A stretch of DNA of 64,000 nucleotides from Mytilus trossulus. Its lineage: Eukaryota. The notes beneath the pieces are model-generated. The model was not told the DNA's origin. It was given only the letters and a program-made list of their open reading frames with translations, and made no database searches. This document shows, one piece after another, positions 7,544-64,000 of this stretch (the stretch's first letter is position 1; every line of letters begins with the position of its first letter). The position numbers were made by a program, and so were the translations under genes. The stretch is taken from assembly GCF_036588685.1 (NCBI RefSeq), contig NC_086385.1, positions 34,433,216-34,497,215 of the forward strand, in the 5' to 3' direction.

Positions 7544-8383
7544 TTAGTATACTCCTTTCTTCATTGGCATTGATTTCATCATTGGCATTGGTTTCATCAT
7601 TTCCATTGGCATTGGCATGGGCTTCATCATTTCCATTGGCATCATTTTTGGCATCATTTCCATCATCTTAGGCATCATTTCCATTTTCATTGGCATCATT
7701 TCCATTGGCATTGGTTTCATCATTTCCATCATCTTAGGCATCATTTCCATTGGCATGGGTTTCATCATTCCCATTGGCATCATTTTCATCATTTCCATTG
7801 GCATCATTTCCATTTTCATTGGCATCATTTTCATCATTTCCATCATCTTAGGCATCATTTCCATTTTCATTGGCATCATTTTCATCATTTCCATCATCTT
7901 AGGCATCATTTCCATTTTCATTGGCATCATTTCTTTCATTTTCATCATTTCCATCATTGGCATCATTTCCTTCATTTTCATCATTTCCATCATTTTTGGC
8001 ATCATTTCCATCTTTCCTTTCATCTCCATCATTTCCTTCATTTTCATCATGCCCATCATTTCTTTCATCTTCATCATTTCCATCATTTTACCTTTCATTT
8101 CCATCATTGGCATCATTTTCATCATTTCCATCATTGGCATGGGCATCATTTTCATCATTTCCATCATTGGCATGGGCATCATTTCCATCATTTTCATCGG
8201 CATCATCTCCATCATCATCGGCTTCATTGGCATCATTTCCATCATGCCACCTTTGCCACCCATACCGCCCATCATTTCCATCGGCATCATTTTCATCATG
8301 TCCATCGGTGGTGGCATCATTTTCATCATACCTGCGTTTACGCTAGCCAATATGGCTGCAGCTGTAATCACGATAAAAGCCAT
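7544..8383 (-). CDS. Secreted methionine-rich repetitive protein, 279 aa (candidate hinge-ligament or shell-matrix structural protein)
   Basis: Single coding exon with signal peptide MAFIVITAAAILASVNA. The mature chain is almost only M, K, E, P and G (55 Met in the first 100 mature residues by hand count) and ends KKGVY. Acceptor TTTTTCAG at 8399-8400, candidate non-coding exon 1 ending at donor 10839, AATAAA at 7341-7336 and 7277-7272. Confidence 0.9.
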   Translation of the reverse strand: MAFIVITAAAILASVNAGMMKMMPPPMDMMKMMPMEMMGGMGGKGGMMEMMPMKPMMMEMMPMKMMEMMPMPMMEMMKMMPMPMMEMMKMMPMMEMKGKMMEMMKMKEMMGMMKMKEMMEMKGKMEMMPKMMEMMKMKEMMPMMEMMKMKEMMPMKMEMMPKMMEMMKMMPMKMEMMPKMMEMMKMMPMKMEMMPMEMMKMMPMGMMKPMPMEMMPKMMEMMKPMPMEMMPMKMEMMPKMMEMMPKMMPMEMMKPMPMPMEMMKPMPMMKSMPMKKGVY

Positions 8384-9924
8384 GTTTTACGACGAAACCT
8401 GAAAAACAAAAAGCACATGGTATAAAACGAAAATATAAAATCAAGCATGCATAATCTTCCAACTGTTCGCTTAGAAATAATCAAATTTTAATGCGGATAA
8501 ACGTATATTTAAGGACTTGAAATAGAAAGGGTTGCAATGGTTTGCTTAACCTCGAACGTAAAGCAGCATTTAGACGTTTTCCCAATGTTACACTTTGTTC
8601 AATTTACTCCAATTATTCTTCGCTCAAAAAACCACACATCCCTAGTATTACCCAGTGACAACATAATATTAACAACCAATAGGACATTTTTATTACAAAA
8701 CTATACCCATGGCATGTTATTTATTTACTCTCTTTACCATCAGTTGCATGAAAATTATTCTGAGGAAGGTTTATCTAGAAAATCGTTTCAGACGCAGTTA
8801 ATTTATCCAGTTATTTTCACTTTACAAAGTAAGAAATATAAAAGCATGAAAATAAATAAGCAGAACATGGTTCATTCTCAATTCAAAAATTGTACCCAAG
8901 CTCGTGAATGAGAAGGTTTGTCTATGAATTGCATGGTACATTATAATGTGACATTGACTTGAAATTTCTTTTCTTGTAAAATTTTGCACAATTTCCATTT
9001 ACGCAAGGACATCTTTAAATATGCGTGTGTTTTAATCAAACTCAGCGTACAAAGTAAACATTTTAAAATAAGAAGTCACAATATTTCGAATACCAATTTG
9101 AAAAGCGTTGATTGTAGATTCAGGTGTCAAAGATAAATTTAAATTGTTGCTGTTTTTCACAATTGATTATCACGATAGAACAACAAATTCTCTCCATCAC
9201 GTAGTGAGAACACAAAATTAACCAATTAAGTACTATTTTAGTTGCATGAACATTACATTTGTTCATAAAAAAGTATAATAAGCATACGCACAATAATGAT
9301 AATTTTTCATTGCAAACATTATCAAAATAAAGCAACAAAGAACTAAAAGAGAACTGGGCATTGAAATTGTATCTTATCAAATAAAGATAAACTCAGTTTT
9401 CCTTCATACATTTACTGCTTTCAGTTAATTATTCTCACATTTGTTACAACAAATTATACGTGTCTCTTAACTTCTAAATATATATGTTGCCTAATATATT
9501 GCTTTTTGAGACACTCCGCGTAATTGTATTTAAAGGAGAGATGGCTTTCAATGTTTTCTTTATATGATTAATTTATGATTTGAGTAAATAATTCATATCA
9601 TTTTAGAGGAGGCTTTTTTGTCTTTTTTATACGTTGTTTACGTTATATTAAATTTTGTCATAGTAGACTATCATGGGATGAATTTTACCCAATCTTTTAT
9701 ACCAGATTAAGTTTTTGGTGTTAGATAATTTTCTCAATAATAAAAATACAGATGTTGCAAATTTTTAAAAGGTCGTCTCAATAAAACATAACTTAACGTG
9801 TAGAAATGTCAATAAATATTGTGCAACTTCAAAACATACATGACCTATTAAATTTTTAAAACATTCAGCTATAAATAGCATACATGTTAGACATAATCAA
9901 TTGCATTATTATAACCAAATAATT

Positions 9925-31700: not shown

Positions 31701-34700
31701 CTTTGTCTGTAGTTGGTGATTTATACGATCTTGTATCATATACTTTTCTTCCTTTTCTGTAAAAAGCAACGATAAAAGTAATATATTTTCATGTGTATAG
31801 CTCAGGGAATTTTAGTTTCTAGGATACAAATTAATTAATTATAGGATAACTAATCGAAATATTCAAATAGAGAAAAATATTCATCGAGTGACCAATCAAC
31901 ACATCAATTCACGAATGCGTGTAGCGCATGAGTCAATATTCAGTGTTTTCAATATTTTAATTCTTTAATTAGTTATTCTTTTTATTACATTGGCAATGGC
32001 TTTTTTAAAAGAAATTAATGTAAAACATGTAAGGAACTATATCTTTTTTCTACGCATTCACAATTTGTTTATTTCACATGTGAAATTATTGGTTTTTATT
32101 TCGCTGGGAAATTAATGTAATTCATTGCAACCAATGTAATAATTTTGATTAGCTATCTCATTCAATGCATATTCTAAAATAAACATGTAAAAATTGTTTT
32201 ACACCACATGTTCAATGTTACACTGAAATTAATTGTCTGAAACCTGTAAAATTGTTGAAAAATTTTCAGTGTATGATTAAAACTCATATCAGTAAAACTT
32301 GAATACTTATTTGGAATATGCATACACTTACTCTTGAACATATTGGGGTCTTGCTGGTTTGCCAAAGGTTGACCTGTATTCTGATGCCCCTTGTTCTTTT
32401 TCTTGTTCATTTAACATGGCTTTATGTTGTACTCTCAGTTTGTCTTGTTTGAATTGCCATTTGTTGATATCATCATGCCATTTTTTCTCGTATTCATATC
32501 CTAGAATCTTTGACATAGACGGTTTGCCATTTCCATTTGTATCTCCCTCAGGTCTGAATAATAAATATCAAATTTGTATATACTGTGCAGAATTATTATG
32601 TGCATTAATTATTGGTAATCATAGACCAAAAACAATATTGTGCAATCTAATTAAAATGATTGAAAAAATTTATGAAGGGAAAACTGATAACTTTTGAAAT
32701 TATGAATTTGCCCGATATGGATTAAACAGCAGGCTATTTATCACATATGCAAAACTACTGTATTTACTACTAAACATATGATAAATTAATATACGGAATA
32801 TTTGAGACGGGTTTCTTACATCTTTTTTTTTCTTACATTTGTACCCTAGAAAACATTCTTACAACTTATTCAACATTTTATTTTACATGGTTTTAAGTAC
32901 ATGTATACCAAAAAAAATAGATATTTGTGCTTACAATGGTAAATATTTAAGATGAGGTCTTTCCAGTTCTATCTGGGACTGTTTAGCTACTGTTGATGGT
33001 TTTGTCCTTTCTTGTGGTCTTGGTTTTGTCTTTAATGGCTTAGCACTACGAACACCAAAACCAGGTTTTTTAACTTCTGGTAATTTAACTGTCTTATCTG
33101 TAACTCTGTCTCCATCCCTCTCAAATGCTGATAACCTATCAAAGGAGAAGGGTTGTCTCCTGGGTCTCTCGTAGAAATCTGTTTCAGGTTTCCATTCCTC
33201 ATGGACCATATATTCAGGAACCATGTACTGATACTCAATGTCATGATTGATTCTGTAAAAGAATTATAAAATACATATAAGCCTTTTCCAAAAAGATGAT
33301 TTTTTTAGCTTTGATATACAGTTAGTAAGGTGTTCACAGCAGGACAGACAACAAAAAAGATCCCTAACATCAATGAAGAGACATTTATTGTCGAAATCCG
33401 GATCTGGTGTACAAAAAAAATATTGACACCTTATATTTGATATGGTAAATAAAGATATGGGAACATAACACTAAACAACATATTTCATTAAATGTGCTGC
33501 CTGTTCTATTAAAACATATACATGATATATGGTGCCCCATGAGACTTATATAAATTTTTAGATTTTCAAATACACTTTCACAAAAAAAAGCAGGTATCTC
33601 ACACACAACTACATGTATATAATGTATATATATATATATATATACGAGTCTAAATTGAAAACTACGTTCAAACCTATGACTGCGTTGGATAAAAACCACA
33701 ATTTTTATATGTGTGCATGTCAAACAAATTTCGTTGTAGAAGGGTCTAAAAACAGCACAAACAACATTTTCCAAAAGACCAAAAGAGTGAAAATATATAT
33801 ATATGAGTTCAATACAGATTTTTGTGCAACAACCTTCACAGAGTGTAAAAGCAAAGAGCATAAAAATGAATAGGAAGTATCAGTACAATGTGTATGTCAG
33901 TGGTTGTAATTTGTTGCAACATGTAACTTGTCATATTATTTTTTGTTTATTGTCTGTCAGGATTTATGCTGTTAGCTTTTTACTTTCAATTGATTCACAA
34001 TTTAGCTTTTTTGTTTTTATATCCTATTAGTCATGTATTTGTTAGACTTTGTGTAAGAGTTTTGCTTATTGTTGAAAGTTGTTTGGTGACATAAAGTTGT
34101 TTAAGGTGGTACCTAACACTACAGGGAGATAACTCTGTAAAATCAGCTAAAGGTTTTAATTACGTTGTGCTATTAAGGGAATATTAAGCTTCTCAATGAT
34201 CAAAATAAGTGTTTGTCAAACTGCTATATAACCAGTGTAATTTTTCTGATAAAACGGTTGGTTCAAATTTTTTAGAATTTTTATATTTTTGTCAAAGGGT
34301 CAAAGTAAATACTTTGTCAAAATTTCAAAAAAAATAAACGAGCCAAATTAATTTTAGTAAAAGTGTTGGGTACCACCTTAAAGCAATCATTTAGACTTTT
34401 GGAAATCATATAATATCTGCCTAATTTTATATTGTTCTGGTAAGTTTGCTCTTACTGTTCAGTCCTTTTCAATTCAGCATCCTCCAGGGCATTATCCTCA
34501 AGATAAAACCATTCAGGTCTGGGATAACCTTTTGGTGCTTTTTCACGCATATTTGGATTCTCTTTGAACTGTAACAAATCTACAATTCACAAAAACAAAC
34601 AATAAAATTAATTGATTATATAATAAGACAGTACTTTGCTACTTGTACTGATGAAAATTTTTTGATTGACATGATTAATTATATTATAATTTTATGTTGT

Positions 34701-58412: not shown

Positions 58413-59238
58413 ATGATTGTATTATTCCATGAACTCTATATCATAGTTCAGACAGTAATAAAATGGTTACGACCTAAACAGCTGTTAAAACAAATCAAAC
58501 ATGGCAAACACGTCAAGTTTGATGATGAATTAGATGGAAGGAAAGAAGAAGTTGTGGAGGAAATGGTGATAAAAGATGTATGTGGTGTGGAATTAGAAGG
58601 GAGGCCACCAGATTTTAGTGTCGATAAAAATGACAAAACTGTGAACTTTCCATTTCTGTGTGATGAGCCGACTATTTCACACATTAAACACTCTAAAACT
58701 ATGTTTATAATGAGAGGAGTTTCTGGTTCAGGGAAATCAACACTAGTTAAATTGATTGGTAATATATATAGGGATAGTCGAATATGTTCAGCCGATCAGT
58801 ATTTTATGAAAAATGGTGAATACCGATTTGACAAATCCAATTTATCAATTGCACATGAAAAATGTGATGAGAAAGCAAAAAAAGCATGTTTAAATGGGGT
58901 ACCAGTGGTTGTCATCGATAATACAAATGTCAAAAGATGGGAAATGTCCAGTTACTTGGCGCTGGCCTTCACAAATAATTATCCTGTTGTCGTAGTACAA
59001 CCAAGAACACCCTGGAGTAAGGATGCTGACAAGTTAGCCGAACTCAATAGCCATGGGGTAACTTCAGATATTATTAGACAAAAATTACGAAGTTTTGAAG
59101 ATGTAGCGCCACTGTATTATGGATGGTTTATTGATGAACAGCAGTCTAACATGATATATCAATTAGGAAGAAAAAGTTTGGAAGAGTGCCTTAGAATTTT
59201 CCCCCAGTTTAAGGATTTGTTACTTTTCAAGTCTCCAG
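58413..59238 (+). CDS. CNP: First coding exon of a 2',3'-cyclic-nucleotide 3'-phosphodiesterase (CNPase)-like gene: N4BP2/PNK-like P-loop domain plus the start of the phosphodiesterase domain
   Basis: NFPFLCDEPTISHIKHSKTMFIMRGVSGSGKSTL resembles CNP FPFLQDE...KTLFILRGLPGSGKSTL. Also SADQYF, IDNTN, PRTPW and NSHGV, and PLYYGWF resembling CNP PLYFGWF. Acceptor at 58370-58371, phase-1 donor CCAG|GTTTGT at 59238. Confidence 0.85.
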
Positions 59239-59998
59239 GTTTGTTTAACATGTTATTTAAATATAAAAAAAGAAGATGTGGTATGATTGCCAATGAGACA
59301 GCTATCCACAAAAGACCAAAATGACACAAACATTAACAACTATAGGTCACTGTATGGCCTTCAACAATGAGCAAAGCCCATACCGCATAGTCAGCTTTAA
59401 TAGGCCCCGATAAGACAATGTAAAACAATTCAAACAAGAAAACTAACAGCTTTATTTATGTAAAAAAATTAACGAAAAACAAATATGTAACACATAAAGT
59501 GTTGTTAAAGTATTAAGTATGTGAATTGTATAGAGATGTTTTAAAACATTTGTTCCACAGAACACTGCATATTTATTTCCAAATGCTGCTGTCAGTGTAA
59601 AAGAGTATATACTGCCAAAAAGTCCATTTATTAGGAAATCTTTTGAGAAAGATGAAATTTTATTGTGTCTTTGAATTTTAAAACTGTTGACTGTATTCAA
59701 CATGTTCAACTGGAATAAAAATCCACTCGATTCATAAAATAAATATGAAAAAATGTAAAAAAGAAATTTTAAAATTTTGATATAGAAACATATTTCAATC
59801 ATGAAGATTATATTAAAGATCTTGTTAAATTTTCCAAAAATTCAAGGAAGGTTTAACAGAATAATGGTATAAAAAACAAAATTAAATAATAAACTTAACC
59901 TTAATGTTGCCACCACAGATGGTGGAATCTAGAATATAGGATCGCTGTGTCTTTCATCCATTATATTCTTCACTGGTAGAATAACTTTTAGGAATGTA

Positions 59999-60207
59999 CT
60001 GTAAATTCAGAAATTACTGGGTGCATTTATTATTACGATTTTGTAATTTTTGACTAGAATATGCGATTTAAATTTTTGCAATATTGATACAAATCCTGTT
60101 TAATTCATATAAAACATTTCAAAATGCAAGTTTCAATTATTGCGATTATAACCCTGTCGCATTTTTCGCAATAATATAAACATCACAATAATTTATGAAT
60201 TTACAGT
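59999..60207. mobile_element. Tc1/mariner-type MITE
   Basis: TA|CTGTAAATTCAGAAATTA...TAATTTATGAATTTACAG|TA. Confidence 0.7.
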
Positions 60208-60282
60208 ATATGATTGAACAAACAAATTGTAATTATTCCAACTTTTATTTAGAATTTAAATTCATGGTTGATATGATTTCAG

Positions 60283-60417
60283 ATCTATTAGAAGCTGTAG
60301 AGAAAGAATTGGATGACTGTATAATGAAGTGCACAGAATGGTATGGTTTGCATTTCCCAGAATTGAAGAAGCTAGTGCCAAACAGTTTGATTTATGCAAG
60401 AGTAGTAAAACAGTTAG
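60283..60417 (+). CDS. NOP58-like exon A (NOSIC region); an alternative acceptor gives a start at 60253
   Basis: DLLEAVEKELDDCIMKCTEWYGLHFPELKKLVPNSLIYARVVKQLG resembles NOP58 [29 protein letters not shown]. Acceptor TTTCAG, donor TAG|GTAATT, phase 1-1. Confidence 0.8.
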
Positions 60418-62004
60418 GTAATTAAGAATTTTTTCTAAAGTACCCTTATTGAAAATCATACAATGATCTTTTCTGAGTTTTTTTTATGATTTGTTACTCT
60501 CTGGCTTTTCTTCTTCAGATAATGCTTTAACATTGATTTTTCTGAATAATGTTAACATTTAAAAAACCCACATTATCTTGACCTTATGATGATTTCTTAT
60601 ATAACCATAAGCAAAAGGTGATCTACCGGTATAACATATTTTAGATATAGAATAATTTATGGTGACCTTGAATGGTGACATGGACATTTTTCATTATTAT
60701 TTGGCCAATATTAAATTTTAGTGATAAGGTCTCCTTCTAAGATTCTTTAAACAAAAGTCAACTGCATTTTAATTTGGTGAAAACAGATGTTAGGAGAACT
60801 AATCTTTTTTTGAAAGGTTCATCTGACCTTGAATCTATTTTCATTGTTCATTGCATTGGTCATGTTAGTATACATTACATTTTTGTGATTTTGATCTGTT
60901 TCTCAGGAGGGGGTTGGGGGTTGGAGGGGTCCTGATCCCGAAATCCTGGGCTTATAAATACGAAAATAAATTTAAATCCTGACATCCCAAAATTTGAAAA
61001 AATGAATTCCCAGATTTAGTAAGGGTCAATCCCAAAATATCGAGCTTAAAAACACTCTATCCCCCCTCCCTCATTAGACCAACAGTATTTGATGTACAGA
61101 ATAATTGTAAGAGGAACAACTCCTTCAGACATACCGGTTTCCTCTGACATTGACTTAATTTTTCATGGATCATTGGTCAACAAGAGGTTTTTGCAATACG
61201 ATTTTTTCTCCGATACCATAAGCCTGATAAGTGAAGAGAGCTGTATTTGTTGTATAATATGATTGTAATGTCTAATGTCTGTCTGACTTCTTCTAACCTT
61301 GACCTCATTTAGCTTTGATCATTAATAGAAATCAAATTTTATGGTGCCAGTAAAGCAGCAATCAAATTCACAAAAATAATTTACAAGAAAAAATATTTGG
61401 AAACCATGATTATTTCAGTATAAGTTTCCATAGATTTTTGTCGTTAGGTTATTTGTGAAAAGAGTCTAGGCAATTATTTCTGCTCTTTAATTAATTCTCA
61501 TGTGTAGTCAAGGTTGTTAAAATTGAGACCCCCTTTGTGATTGAATGTCATCTTATAGATCAATCTCCGGCGCAGAGTTCTTATCCGTTCCGTACATGCT
61601 TGGCAATACTGCACTTAATATGACCTCTGCCTTACATTGTCCGACTCCATGAGGAAATTTCCTCATGGCTGACAAGCATTTGGTATTCTCTGCAAAGTCT
61701 GTTGCGTGATACACAACCTACCTAAGAATGTCAAATTTTTTTATGCGGAAGGTTTGGAGTAATCAGGTAAAGTGGCGATGGCGGAAATTATGAGAATCAT
61801 CTCCTCACCTCATCTCCTTCAACTAGGATTTTGGCCAAATTAAAGTTTTAAAATTACTTATTTAATTATATTGAGGTAAGAGTTACAAAGAATGAATTGA
61901 ATGGAACGAATATGTGATGTCTGCTTCGGAGAGTGCTTATAGATCAGCTTCTTTTTCAATCCTTTATTCCTTTGTCATAATTTATATCAATTTATTTTTG
62001 ACAG

Positions 62005-62150
62005 GTCACAGAAAAAATGCAAACAGTAAAAATTTTAGTAACATTTTACCGAGGAAACAAGAGAATGATGTGAAATTTACAGCTAAACATTCAATGGGAA
62101 AAGACATTTCTGATGAAGATTTAATACTCATTACTGATTTATGTGTTCAG
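62005..62150 (+). CDS. NOP58-like exon B
   Basis: GHRKNANSKNFSNILPRKQENDVKFTAKHSMGKDISDEDLILITDLCVQ resembles NOP58 GDRKN...ELLPEEVEAEVKAAAEISMGTEVSEEDICNILHLCTQ. Acceptor TTGACAG, donor CAG|GTTAGT, phase 1-0. Confidence 0.8.
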
Positions 62151-62497
62151 GTTAGTTTATTTCGCATGCAAGTAAAACCTAGACAACTGCCAAAATGAAT
62201 GAGTTGATATTCATCACTTATGTGTTCAGGTTACTAGTATGTTACATGGAAGTAAAACCCAGAGGACTGCCAAAATGAATGAGTTGATAATCATGACTTA
62301 TTTATGTGTTCAGTTTACTAGTATGTTACATACAAGTAAAACCCAGAGGACTGCCAAAATGAATGAGTTGATAATCATGACTTATTTATGTGTTCAGTTT
62401 ACTAGTATGTTACATACAAGTAAAACCCAGAGGACTGCCAAAATGAATGAGTTGATAATCATGACTTATTTATGTGTTCAGTTTACTAGTATGTTAC
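62113..62497 (+). repeat. ~84 bp tandem repeat (about 4.6 copies) derived from the exon B 3' end and its splice donor
   Basis: TTATGTGTTCAG(G/T)TTA...AAGTAAAACC(T/C)AGA...ACTGCCAAAATGAATGAGTTGATA repeated. Confidence 0.85.
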
Positions 62498-63803
62498 TGT
62501 AACATACTGACAAAAATGCGTTAGAATGACAAATTTACGACAAACAAACTTCAAATTGTGATCATTTGAGAAATACTGAAATTAAAATGTGAACTATCCG
62601 AGGGGGGACACTTTCAAAACTTAAGTGACAAAATTGATTTGAAATACTTTCTTCAATGAGAAAACTATGTTCGTAAATTATGAAAGTGACCATTCGCTAG
62701 CAAAATCACTGATGTTATGTAGAAGTAAAACCTACAAAAACTGTCAAACAACTTAATTGAAACCTACATTATAATATTTCAAAAATTCATGAAACCCAGT
62801 TAAAGTGGTTGGTTTAGAAAATGAGTGAGCCTAAGGTAAAAATATAAACTTCTTTCATTAATTGACTTGTTGAAGGTCATATGATTACCTACGGATTTAA
62901 CGTCACCTTACTAATGTTACTTTGCCTCTGGTGGAGAGCTGTCTCATTGGCAATCATACCCCATCTTTTTTTTAAGGAACCTGGCTTGTCATGTTTTGGA
63001 TTTTCTATCGTTTTATCCATTTGAATTCCTTGAAAAAATTTGCCTGGTGATCCCCATTTTTTTTGGGGTAAATCTTTTACATGTATAATTATAACCATCT
63101 GTAAAAGTCTTATAAAATTTTAATTACTTTTGAACAGTTTTTGAGAACTTCCACCTGTCGATGATAAAGCTATGAAAAGTCAAAAGAGAATATTTTCCCT
63201 CCAAAATTTCAATGGCTTAAATCTCGAAAACAAGCACGGTGACCTATATATTTTTTTTGCTATTTGGATTCCTTTATTAATTCCCTATCAATATTAAGTA
63301 GTGTTTTGAAAAGTAAATTACTTTGAAATTTAGAAGCGAACACCCTTAAGTTTACTCTTTAAGGGATGTATTGATTGCAACTCAGATTTGGCATCTCACC
63401 AAATATTGACCTATTTTATCTTTATAAAACCAAAACATATTCATGATATTGTAAGTTGGAAAAATTGTACATATATATCCCCAATAATTTAGACCAGGTA
63501 CATTTATAAATTTCCATTTATTTGTACTTTATTAATTAAAGAAATGTTTCAACGGAAAAAAACTTCCTTTGGAACCACACTAGATTGACTTTAAATTAAG
63601 AAAATACATTCATAATGGTTTTCTCTTTTAAATTGCTTTACCATGTTAACATTTTGCTTTGCTGGTTTCATATGGTATTTTGAACTCCCTCAAGAGTGAA
63701 TCATGGATTATAAAATACCATATCGAAAAATACCAGTTTTAAAAAAAAAATGGTTGAAAGAGTGACCTTTGTGTACTAATTTCTTTGTCATTTGGTATTT
63801 CAG

Positions 63804-63930
63804 ATAATAGAACTAACAGATTTCAAAGACAACTTAGAAGAATTCATAAGAAATCCAATGACAGCAAACTCTCCCAAAGTAACAGAACATGTTGGTCAGG
63901 TGATAGGACCACTTCTTATTTCACATGCAG
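63804..63930 (+). CDS. NOP58-like exon C (gene presumably continues beyond the window)
   Basis: IIELTDFKDNLEEFIRNPMTANSPKVTEHVGQVIGPLLISHA(G) resembles NOP58 [43 protein letters not shown]. Acceptor TTTCAG, donor CAG|GTAAAA, phase 0-1. Confidence 0.8.
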
Positions 63931-64000
63931 GTAAAATAGTGCAATTAAACTGTGATAGGGGTTCTAAATGTAATTCTTGGCCATGGATGGATATAGCTTT

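Follow-up and report, generated by a model that had tools for sequence, protein, structure and literature searches.

A CNPase-type gene of mytilid mussels carrying a three-exon NOP58 coiled-coil module between its kinase-like and phosphodiesterase parts

The window analysed here is a stretch of 64,000 nucleotides (nt) of AT-rich eukaryotic DNA from the mussel Mytilus trossulus (contig NC_086385.1, C13 in the following; C13:34433216-34497215). Near its right-hand end begins a gene that combines an enzyme of the CNPase type with a part of NOP58, a core protein of small nucleolar ribonucleoproteins (snoRNPs). The original prediction had proposed such a chimera from four exons within the window, and all four lie exactly where it placed them, with AG/GT borders and a phase-1 donor at 59238. 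Together with a fifth exon beyond the window they tile the RefSeq protein XP_063410923.1 exactly: the five translations equal its residues 1-275, 277-320, 322-369, 370-411 and 413-603 with no mismatch, and the gaps are split codons. XP_063410923.1 and XP_063410924.1 (P0154) are 603 amino acids (aa) long and carry the Pfam domains AAA_33, Nop and CNPase; their RefSeq name is '2',3'-cyclic-nucleotide 3'-phosphodiesterase-like [Mytilus trossulus]'. The coding exons span 6.8 kb in M. trossulus, and the NOP58-derived part consists of exactly three exons within a host coding region of otherwise two (Table 1). Database searches were run exon by exon, whereas full-length work used the database protein XP_063410923.1; the module exons were concatenated only for local tblastn and for the codon comparison with NOP58.

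Table 1. Positions of the exons of the chimeric gene, of their counterparts in the canonical NOP58 gene and of a tandem repeat. Positions are those of the window unless C13 is given.
Feature	Position	Strand	Description
Coding exon 1	58413-59238	+	826 nt; ATG, variable N-terminus, P-loop kinase-like domain, first 2H helices and strand
Intron 1	59239-60282	+	1044 nt; holds common interspersed repeats
Module exon A	60283-60417	+	135 nt, phase 1>1; NOP58 coiled-coil helix 1, EWYG(W/L)HFPEL motif
Module exon B	62005-62150	+	146 nt, phase 1>0; tip region of the NOP58 coiled-coil domain
Module exon C	63804-63930	+	127 nt, phase 0>1; coiled-coil helix 2 and first Nop-core helix
Exon 5, last coding exon (2H)	window-equivalent 64606-65183 = C13:34497821-34498398	+	beyond the window; HCT and HVT, TGA stop
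Canonical NOP58 counterpart of exon A	C13:15816355-15816489		135 nt, 64% nt identity, ungapped
Canonical NOP58 counterpart of exon B	C13:15817056-15817201		146 nt, 58% nt identity, ungapped
Canonical NOP58 counterpart of exon C	C13:15819272-15819398		127 nt, 60% nt identity, ungapped
Tandem repeat	62113-62497		84-nt unit, 4.7 copies, 90% matches; begins inside exon B

Exon 1, which has a single match genome-wide, ends at the donor CAG/gtttgt. It matches the AAA_33 P-loop family of Pfam (E 5e-13) and, with its last residues, positions 2-28 of the CNPase profile. That profile (PF05881) has a single match in the genome, at C13:34497766-34498371 (97.8 bits against a cut-off of 25; profile positions 29-215), which begins 621 nt beyond module exon C. 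The corresponding exon 5 starts 675 nt past exon C behind a pyrimidine-rich acceptor, is phase-1 compatible and encodes ..KILHCTAMF.. and ..AAHVTIG.., the two HxT motifs. The first of these, HCT, follows the module after 20 residues. The sequence past position 64000 thus holds the 2H exon with both HxT motifs and no further NOP58 exons, and a symmetric phase-1 module does precede the first HxT motif, as had been predicted. The alternative that had been offered alongside, in which the NOP58 part replaces the phosphodiesterase domain, is contradicted by this intact exon.

The N-terminal polynucleotide kinase (PNK)-like domain contains a Walker A motif, GVSGSGKST, which is encoded in exon 1. Across 60 homologues, G102, G105, S106, G107, K108, D128, D169-N172 (DNTN), H431/T433 and H522/T524 are nearly invariant, and the catalytic motifs of both enzyme domains appear intact. 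A C-terminal CaaX isoprenylation signal is not present, the protein ending in GFYGGSFNNSPKK (..NSPKK); CaaX isoprenylation is a feature of vertebrate myelin CNPase and not of the wider family.

NOP58 belongs to the core of box C/D snoRNPs and has archaeal Nop5, NOP56 and PRP31 as relatives. Its coiled coil pairs with that of NOP56, while archaeal Nop5 pairs with itself; the N-terminal NOP5NT domain binds fibrillarin, and the C-terminal Nop core binds Snu13/L7Ae and the kink-turn (K-turn). The three module exons add up to 408 nt, each is bordered by an AG acceptor and a GT donor, and no stop interrupts the frame set by the exon-1 donor. They match the Pfam Nop profile (PF01798) at positions 1-43 (exon A, E 4e-11), 51-91 and 93-134, and for each exon the NOP58 chains of the PDB ranked above those of NOP56, archaeal Nop5 and PRP31. 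The human NOP58 equivalents are residues 168-209 for exon A, 214-260 for exon B (E 7e-5) and 261-302 for exon C, and in the PDB alignments the module as a whole corresponds to residues 168-302, the coiled-coil domain. The proposal of a stop-free middle part of NOP58 in the correct order is thereby borne out exon by exon. N-terminal NOP58 exons are missing, as had also been noted: NOP5NT (PF08156) is not at the chimeric locus and has its sole genome-wide match at C4:34.587 Mb. Exons of the C-terminal Nop core (Pfam Nop positions ~141-228) were found neither at the locus nor in the 30 kb downstream.

An alternative AG acceptor lies 30 nt upstream of exon A. The added segment (60253-60282) is in frame and contains two ATG triplets, at 60264 and 60273; the RefSeq protein uses the acceptor at 60283, not the one at 60253.

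The genome contains three other Nop-domain loci. The closest to the module is the canonical NOP58 gene at C13:15.816-15.821 Mb, 18.7 Mb away on the same contig, which is identified as NOP58 rather than NOP56 by the scores of its next exon (92.7 vs 76.9 bits). Exon phases and AG/GT borders are identical between the module and the mussel NOP58 exons, down to the end of exon C, ..SHA G/gt, where the canonical exon ends likewise. The original prediction had pointed to equivalent intron positions in vertebrate NOP58; the comparison made here is with the mussel's own gene only, and there the exon lengths and phases agree completely. At the protein level 64 of 135 aa are identical (47%) with zero indels, and the codon comparison gave 51, 33 and 76 differences at codon positions 1, 2 and 3, respectively, with a nonsynonymous divergence (dN) of 0.34-0.36 and a saturated synonymous divergence (dS). 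When the NOP58 locus was compared with the host locus by tblastx, only the three module exons matched, besides shared interspersed repeats. Judged by these alignments, the module is a DNA-level copy and not a retrocopy, because introns are retained and exon borders are identical. Intron 1 would represent the upstream portion of the ancestral intron, of phase 1, that received the module.

Several repeats lie in the introns of the gene. A repeat of ~210 bp at 59997-60208, 75 nt upstream of exon A, has an inverted copy of 85% identity at C13:15815342-15815551, which precedes the corresponding NOP58 exon by ~800 nt. Both loci contain more copies elsewhere, which identifies the repeat as an interspersed element rather than a remnant of the duplication. 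Between exons B and C, a repeat of ~340 bp (63010-63350) has 2,714 genomic candidates, and 39 of 39 further places that were scored are 88-93% identical; it is probably an element of the short interspersed nuclear element (SINE) or miniature inverted-repeat transposable element (MITE) type. The tandem repeat that begins inside exon B duplicates the last 38 nt of this exon together with its donor, and the first copy alone is in the exon reading frame. Copy 2 keeps a CAG/GT, located 79 nt downstream, whose use would shift the reading frame, and the later copies are without the GT.

An AlphaFold2 model built from a 60-row alignment has a mean predicted local distance difference test score (pLDDT) of 83.4 and a predicted template modelling score (pTM) of 0.72, with values mostly of 88-93 in the module. 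Foldseek matches in the PDB were re-aligned with VIA-align. Residues 232-594 of the model superpose on human CNPase (1woj) with a Z score of 25.6 and a root-mean-square deviation (rmsd) of 2.0 A over 205 residues, and the catalytic domains of human and mouse CNPase both give Z of ~25. Residues 265-391 superpose on the NOP58 chains of the small-subunit (SSU) processome with Z of 16-17 and an rmsd of 1.9-2.8 A over 119-125 residues, at 37-42% identity. The CNPase match extends across both flanks of the module, which would therefore be an excursion from the N-terminal 2H segment that replaces no part of the fold. It is predicted to form a helical hairpin that projects from the surface ~20 residues ahead of the first HxT motif.

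The fusion is found in five Mytilus species. Besides M. trossulus, the 90% cluster includes M. galloprovincialis, M. californianus, M. edulis and M. coruscus, with proteins of 601-604 aa, and the M. edulis protein is present in two independent annotations, one of them from RefSeq. Moreover, a second mytilid-like clade (clade 2; P0156 and five others) has proteins of 582-583 aa with the same three domains and 64-66% identity. The clade-2 open reading frames (ORFs) come from ENA and Logan contigs of 1957-2466 nt, and these contigs represent spliced mRNA, given that the gene spans 6.8 kb of genomic DNA in M. trossulus. The module is therefore included in the mRNA in at least one clade. Other clade-2 contigs read through the exon-1 donor (..LLLFQSPGIYDF..), so the intron is present in clade 2 too, and unspliced contigs of relatives likewise continue through this donor (P0151, P0260, P0001). 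In total, the whole module is present in six of six full-length Mytilus models and in six of six clade-2 transcript ORFs.

One further M. coruscus model, CAC5398330.1 (P0017), has 318 aa and is named 'NOP58'. It consists of exon 1, exon A and a 2H part without the second HxT motif. Since its shared parts agree at 99% identity with the full M. coruscus protein of 604 aa, a haplotig or a mis-model is the likely explanation.

Outside these two clades the enzyme occurs without the module. Among 85 representatives of CNP-like clusters, AAA_33 was detected in 84, CNPase in 70 and Nop in one, from Mytilus. In a profile search with 119 hits, Nop was confined to the two mytilid clusters and was absent from the homologues of a scallop, a chiton, gastropods, other bivalves, hemichordates and further animals; orthologues that do not have the module include those of Argopecten (468 aa) and Liolophura (512 aa), among others. 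A metagenome scan with exon 1 returned only distant microbial P-loop kinases (~35% identity), and a protein search with the module alone, taken as a region of XP_063410923.1, returned only that protein and one archaeal-type Nop5. As far as the searched collections show, the insertion is specific to the mytilid lineage.

The module is free of gaps in 12 of 12 aligned full-length proteins from the two clades, and its conservation resembles that of the enzyme domains on either side. Within Mytilus the mean identity is 94.2% for the kinase-like domain, 93.7% for the module and 94.8% for the 2H domain; between the clades the respective values are 70.3%, 64.7% and 67.5%, compared with 34% for the free N-terminus. 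Of the 135 module sites, 50 are unchanged in everything when canonical NOP58 is included, and 34 have a residue that is common to both mytilid clades and different from NOP58. Changes restricted to Mytilus affect 10 sites and those restricted to clade 2 affect 13, the remaining 28 being variable or different among all three. The pattern of shared derived sites indicates many changes in the stem after capture, followed by conservation.

We also simulated neutral decay, starting from the canonical NOP58 exons and using the local intron base composition. At a p-distance of 0.24 the 135 codons remained free of stops in 0.7% of runs; the share fell to 0.2-0.3% for p-distances of 0.31-0.37. The module itself stands at a p-distance of 0.395, and the overall simulated probability of an open frame is 0.001-0.007. 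Retention under new constraints, which the original prediction had suggested from the open frame, is supported by the behaviour of the 12 orthologues in two clades, in which module and enzyme domains show a similar degree of conservation.

Taken together, these data make it very probable that this is a genuine chimeric gene formed by exon shuffling and that the mature protein contains the module. Several points weigh against this interpretation. Constraint was measured on proteins only, and for M. trossulus itself the evidence of inclusion comes from the RefSeq model and from transcripts of the related clade. Of the module exons, P0017 from M. coruscus includes only exon A. An otherwise invariant Trp in the motif of exon A has become Leu in two species, M. 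trossulus and M. galloprovincialis, and Ser in two clade-2 sequences, which implies that some NOP58-type contacts are relaxed. Finally, a homodimer prediction with residues 270-415 gave no verdict and counts neither for nor against binding.

The module might instead be an optional cassette, the main product being a 467-aa enzyme that skips it and the 603-aa form a minor or regulated isoform. Phase symmetry would allow this, since none of the exons, A alone, B with C, or all three can be used in frame, and P0017 shows exon A without the others. However, P0017 is truncated, has a broken 2H part and is most likely a haplotig or mis-model, all of the full-length Mytilus models and clade-2 ORFs carry the whole module, and its conservation equals that of the catalytic domains. 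No Mytilus protein of ~467 or ~512 aa turned up in the searches whose length ranges covered them, and the suggestion in the original prediction that the module could be either included or skipped finds no skipping isoform among the protein collections searched. We therefore regard the cassette explanation as improbable. The same conservation bears on the idea of a dead intronic relic of a segmental duplication that gene predictors stitched into the models. Such a relic would agree with the low identity to NOP58 (47%), with the loss of the invariant Trp in M. trossulus and with the computational nature of the RefSeq models, but clade-2 contigs of 2.0-2.5 kb encode the 582-583-aa fusion, the 408 nt have acquired neither indel nor stop, six of six splice sites are kept and the neutral simulation gives P of 0.001-0.007. 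In addition, shared derived residues are kept in both clades alongside the enzyme-like conservation, and we give this explanation almost no credence.

A third possibility accepts that the module is translated and regards it as a passive spacer, tolerated in a permissive loop and without a role in partner binding. In yeast and lancelet, the homologous enzymes have large insertions within or close to the same region (PMC5434554), the homodimer prediction is silent on the matter, and the regions by which NOP58 binds fibrillarin and Snu13/RNA are absent. Yet a spacer would be expected to gain indels and to evolve faster, whereas none is seen in 12 sequences and the rate is that of the enzyme domains; the hairpin, moreover, is modelled with a pLDDT of ~90 and superposes on NOP58. 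We consider a mere spacer unlikely. Two other candidates were discarded. A separate truncated NOP58 gene is rejected on two grounds, the in-frame continuation into the 2H exon and the complete transcripts of clade 2; a misassembly is rejected, as the same architecture recurs in annotated proteins of five Mytilus species.

Under the preferred reading of a chimeric gene, three consecutive NOP58 exons with their introns would have been copied, in an ancestor of the mytilid mussels, into the single phase-1 intron of a gene for a PNK/2',3'-cyclic phosphodiesterase (CPDase). The copied segment would have comprised the coiled-coil domain with phase-1 introns on its flanks, and would have landed in sense orientation; the three exons could be spliced in because the phases match. 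We infer the shuffling event itself from the sequence comparisons described above. Its product would be a 603-aa protein made of a P-loop kinase-like domain, a NOP58-type helical hairpin and a 2H phosphodiesterase core, in which the hairpin would keep the fold that serves for the pairing of NOP58 with NOP56 and of archaeal Nop5 with itself.

Protein pairing may thus be the likeliest role of the module, either as self-association or as docking on coiled coils of the NOP56 type, because neither the N-terminal domain that binds fibrillarin nor the Nop core that binds Snu13 and the K-turn is present. For the same reason, with no parts for fibrillarin or for Snu13/RNA, the module could not scaffold a snoRNP alone. 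Pairing would bring an enzyme that processes RNA 5'-OH and 2',3'-cyclic-phosphate ends to its partner. The specific proposal that the captured coiled coil still pairs with NOP56 or with itself, and so links end repair to the nucleolar machinery or dimerises the enzyme, is tentative, and we rate it as rather doubtful at present.

The host gene is the counterpart, in an invertebrate, of vertebrate CNPase and is likewise homologous to the tRNA-healing enzyme of the lancelet. It belongs to a family that heals RNA 5'-OH and 2',3'-cyclic-phosphate ends (PMC5434554). The PNK/CPDase of the lancelet Branchiostoma floridae, a CNPase homologue, is an active tRNA-healing enzyme with PNK and CPDase activity, and the yeast homologue shows both activities and tolerates a long insertion between the domains (PMC5434554). 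In common with the lancelet PNK/CPDase, yeast Trl1 (its healing domains) and vertebrate CNPase, the mussel protein has an N-terminal P-loop PNK-like domain and, after it, a 2H domain that bears two HxT motifs. It differs from all of them by the additional 136-residue NOP58 coiled coil between the first 2H elements and the first HxT motif, and from vertebrate CNPase by having no CaaX-type end; its own PNK and CPDase activities are putative.

Compared with NOP58, the module retains the coiled coil, the same three exons with their lengths and phases, and the predicted fold, but it is without NOP5NT, the C-terminal Nop core and the Lys-rich tail and is embedded in an enzyme. It is also far more divergent: its identity to mussel NOP58 is 47%, whereas canonical exon A differs from yeast at only ~8 of 41 positions. 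Classical exon shuffling of the Patthy type concerns symmetric phase 1-1 modules of metazoan proteins. The present case resembles it in that a phase-1-bounded module entered a phase-1 intron with the frame kept. In contrast to the classical cases, three exons moved together with their introns, the donor is a housekeeping gene of a nuclear ribonucleoprotein (RNP) and not a gene for an extracellular protein, and the insertion lies inside an enzyme fold.

Elsewhere in the window, at 7544-8402 and 33385-33861, there are three ORFs of 158-279 aa with no Pfam match, two of which overlap on opposite strands. They are probably repeat-derived or due to chance.

The original prediction knew of no described CNP-NOP58 fusion. 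This stands for the literature searched, where we found no paper that discusses the fusion or links CNPase and NOP58, and where NOP58 together with Mytilus appeared in a single paper, on a cephalopod transcriptome; it does not hold for the databases, in which the gene was already present. The proteins are known in RefSeq and UniProt under CNPase-like names, and what is new is their recognition as a PNK/CPDase with a captured NOP58 coiled coil. For annotation, the M. coruscus model named 'NOP58' is a pitfall that can mislead studies of expression or orthology.

This gene offers a well-documented example of exon shuffling, in which the donor, the host, matching phases and unchanged exon lengths can be compared in one genome and the product is conserved across a family. 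It indicates that an enzyme fold can take up three exons of a housekeeping RNP scaffold, which may then come under a new regime, with 34 shared derived residues followed by stasis. The hairpin may also provide a handle on CNPase-type enzymes, since a partner bound by it would give a clue to the RNAs on which the mussel enzyme acts. If the coiled coil pairs with NOP56, an RNA 5'-kinase/2',3'-cyclic phosphodiesterase would be tethered to box C/D snoRNPs or to pre-ribosomal assemblies; if it pairs with itself, the result would be a dimeric healing enzyme. If so, the repair of RNA ends would be physically connected in mussels, as a trait of their lineage, to the nucleolar machinery for RNA processing.

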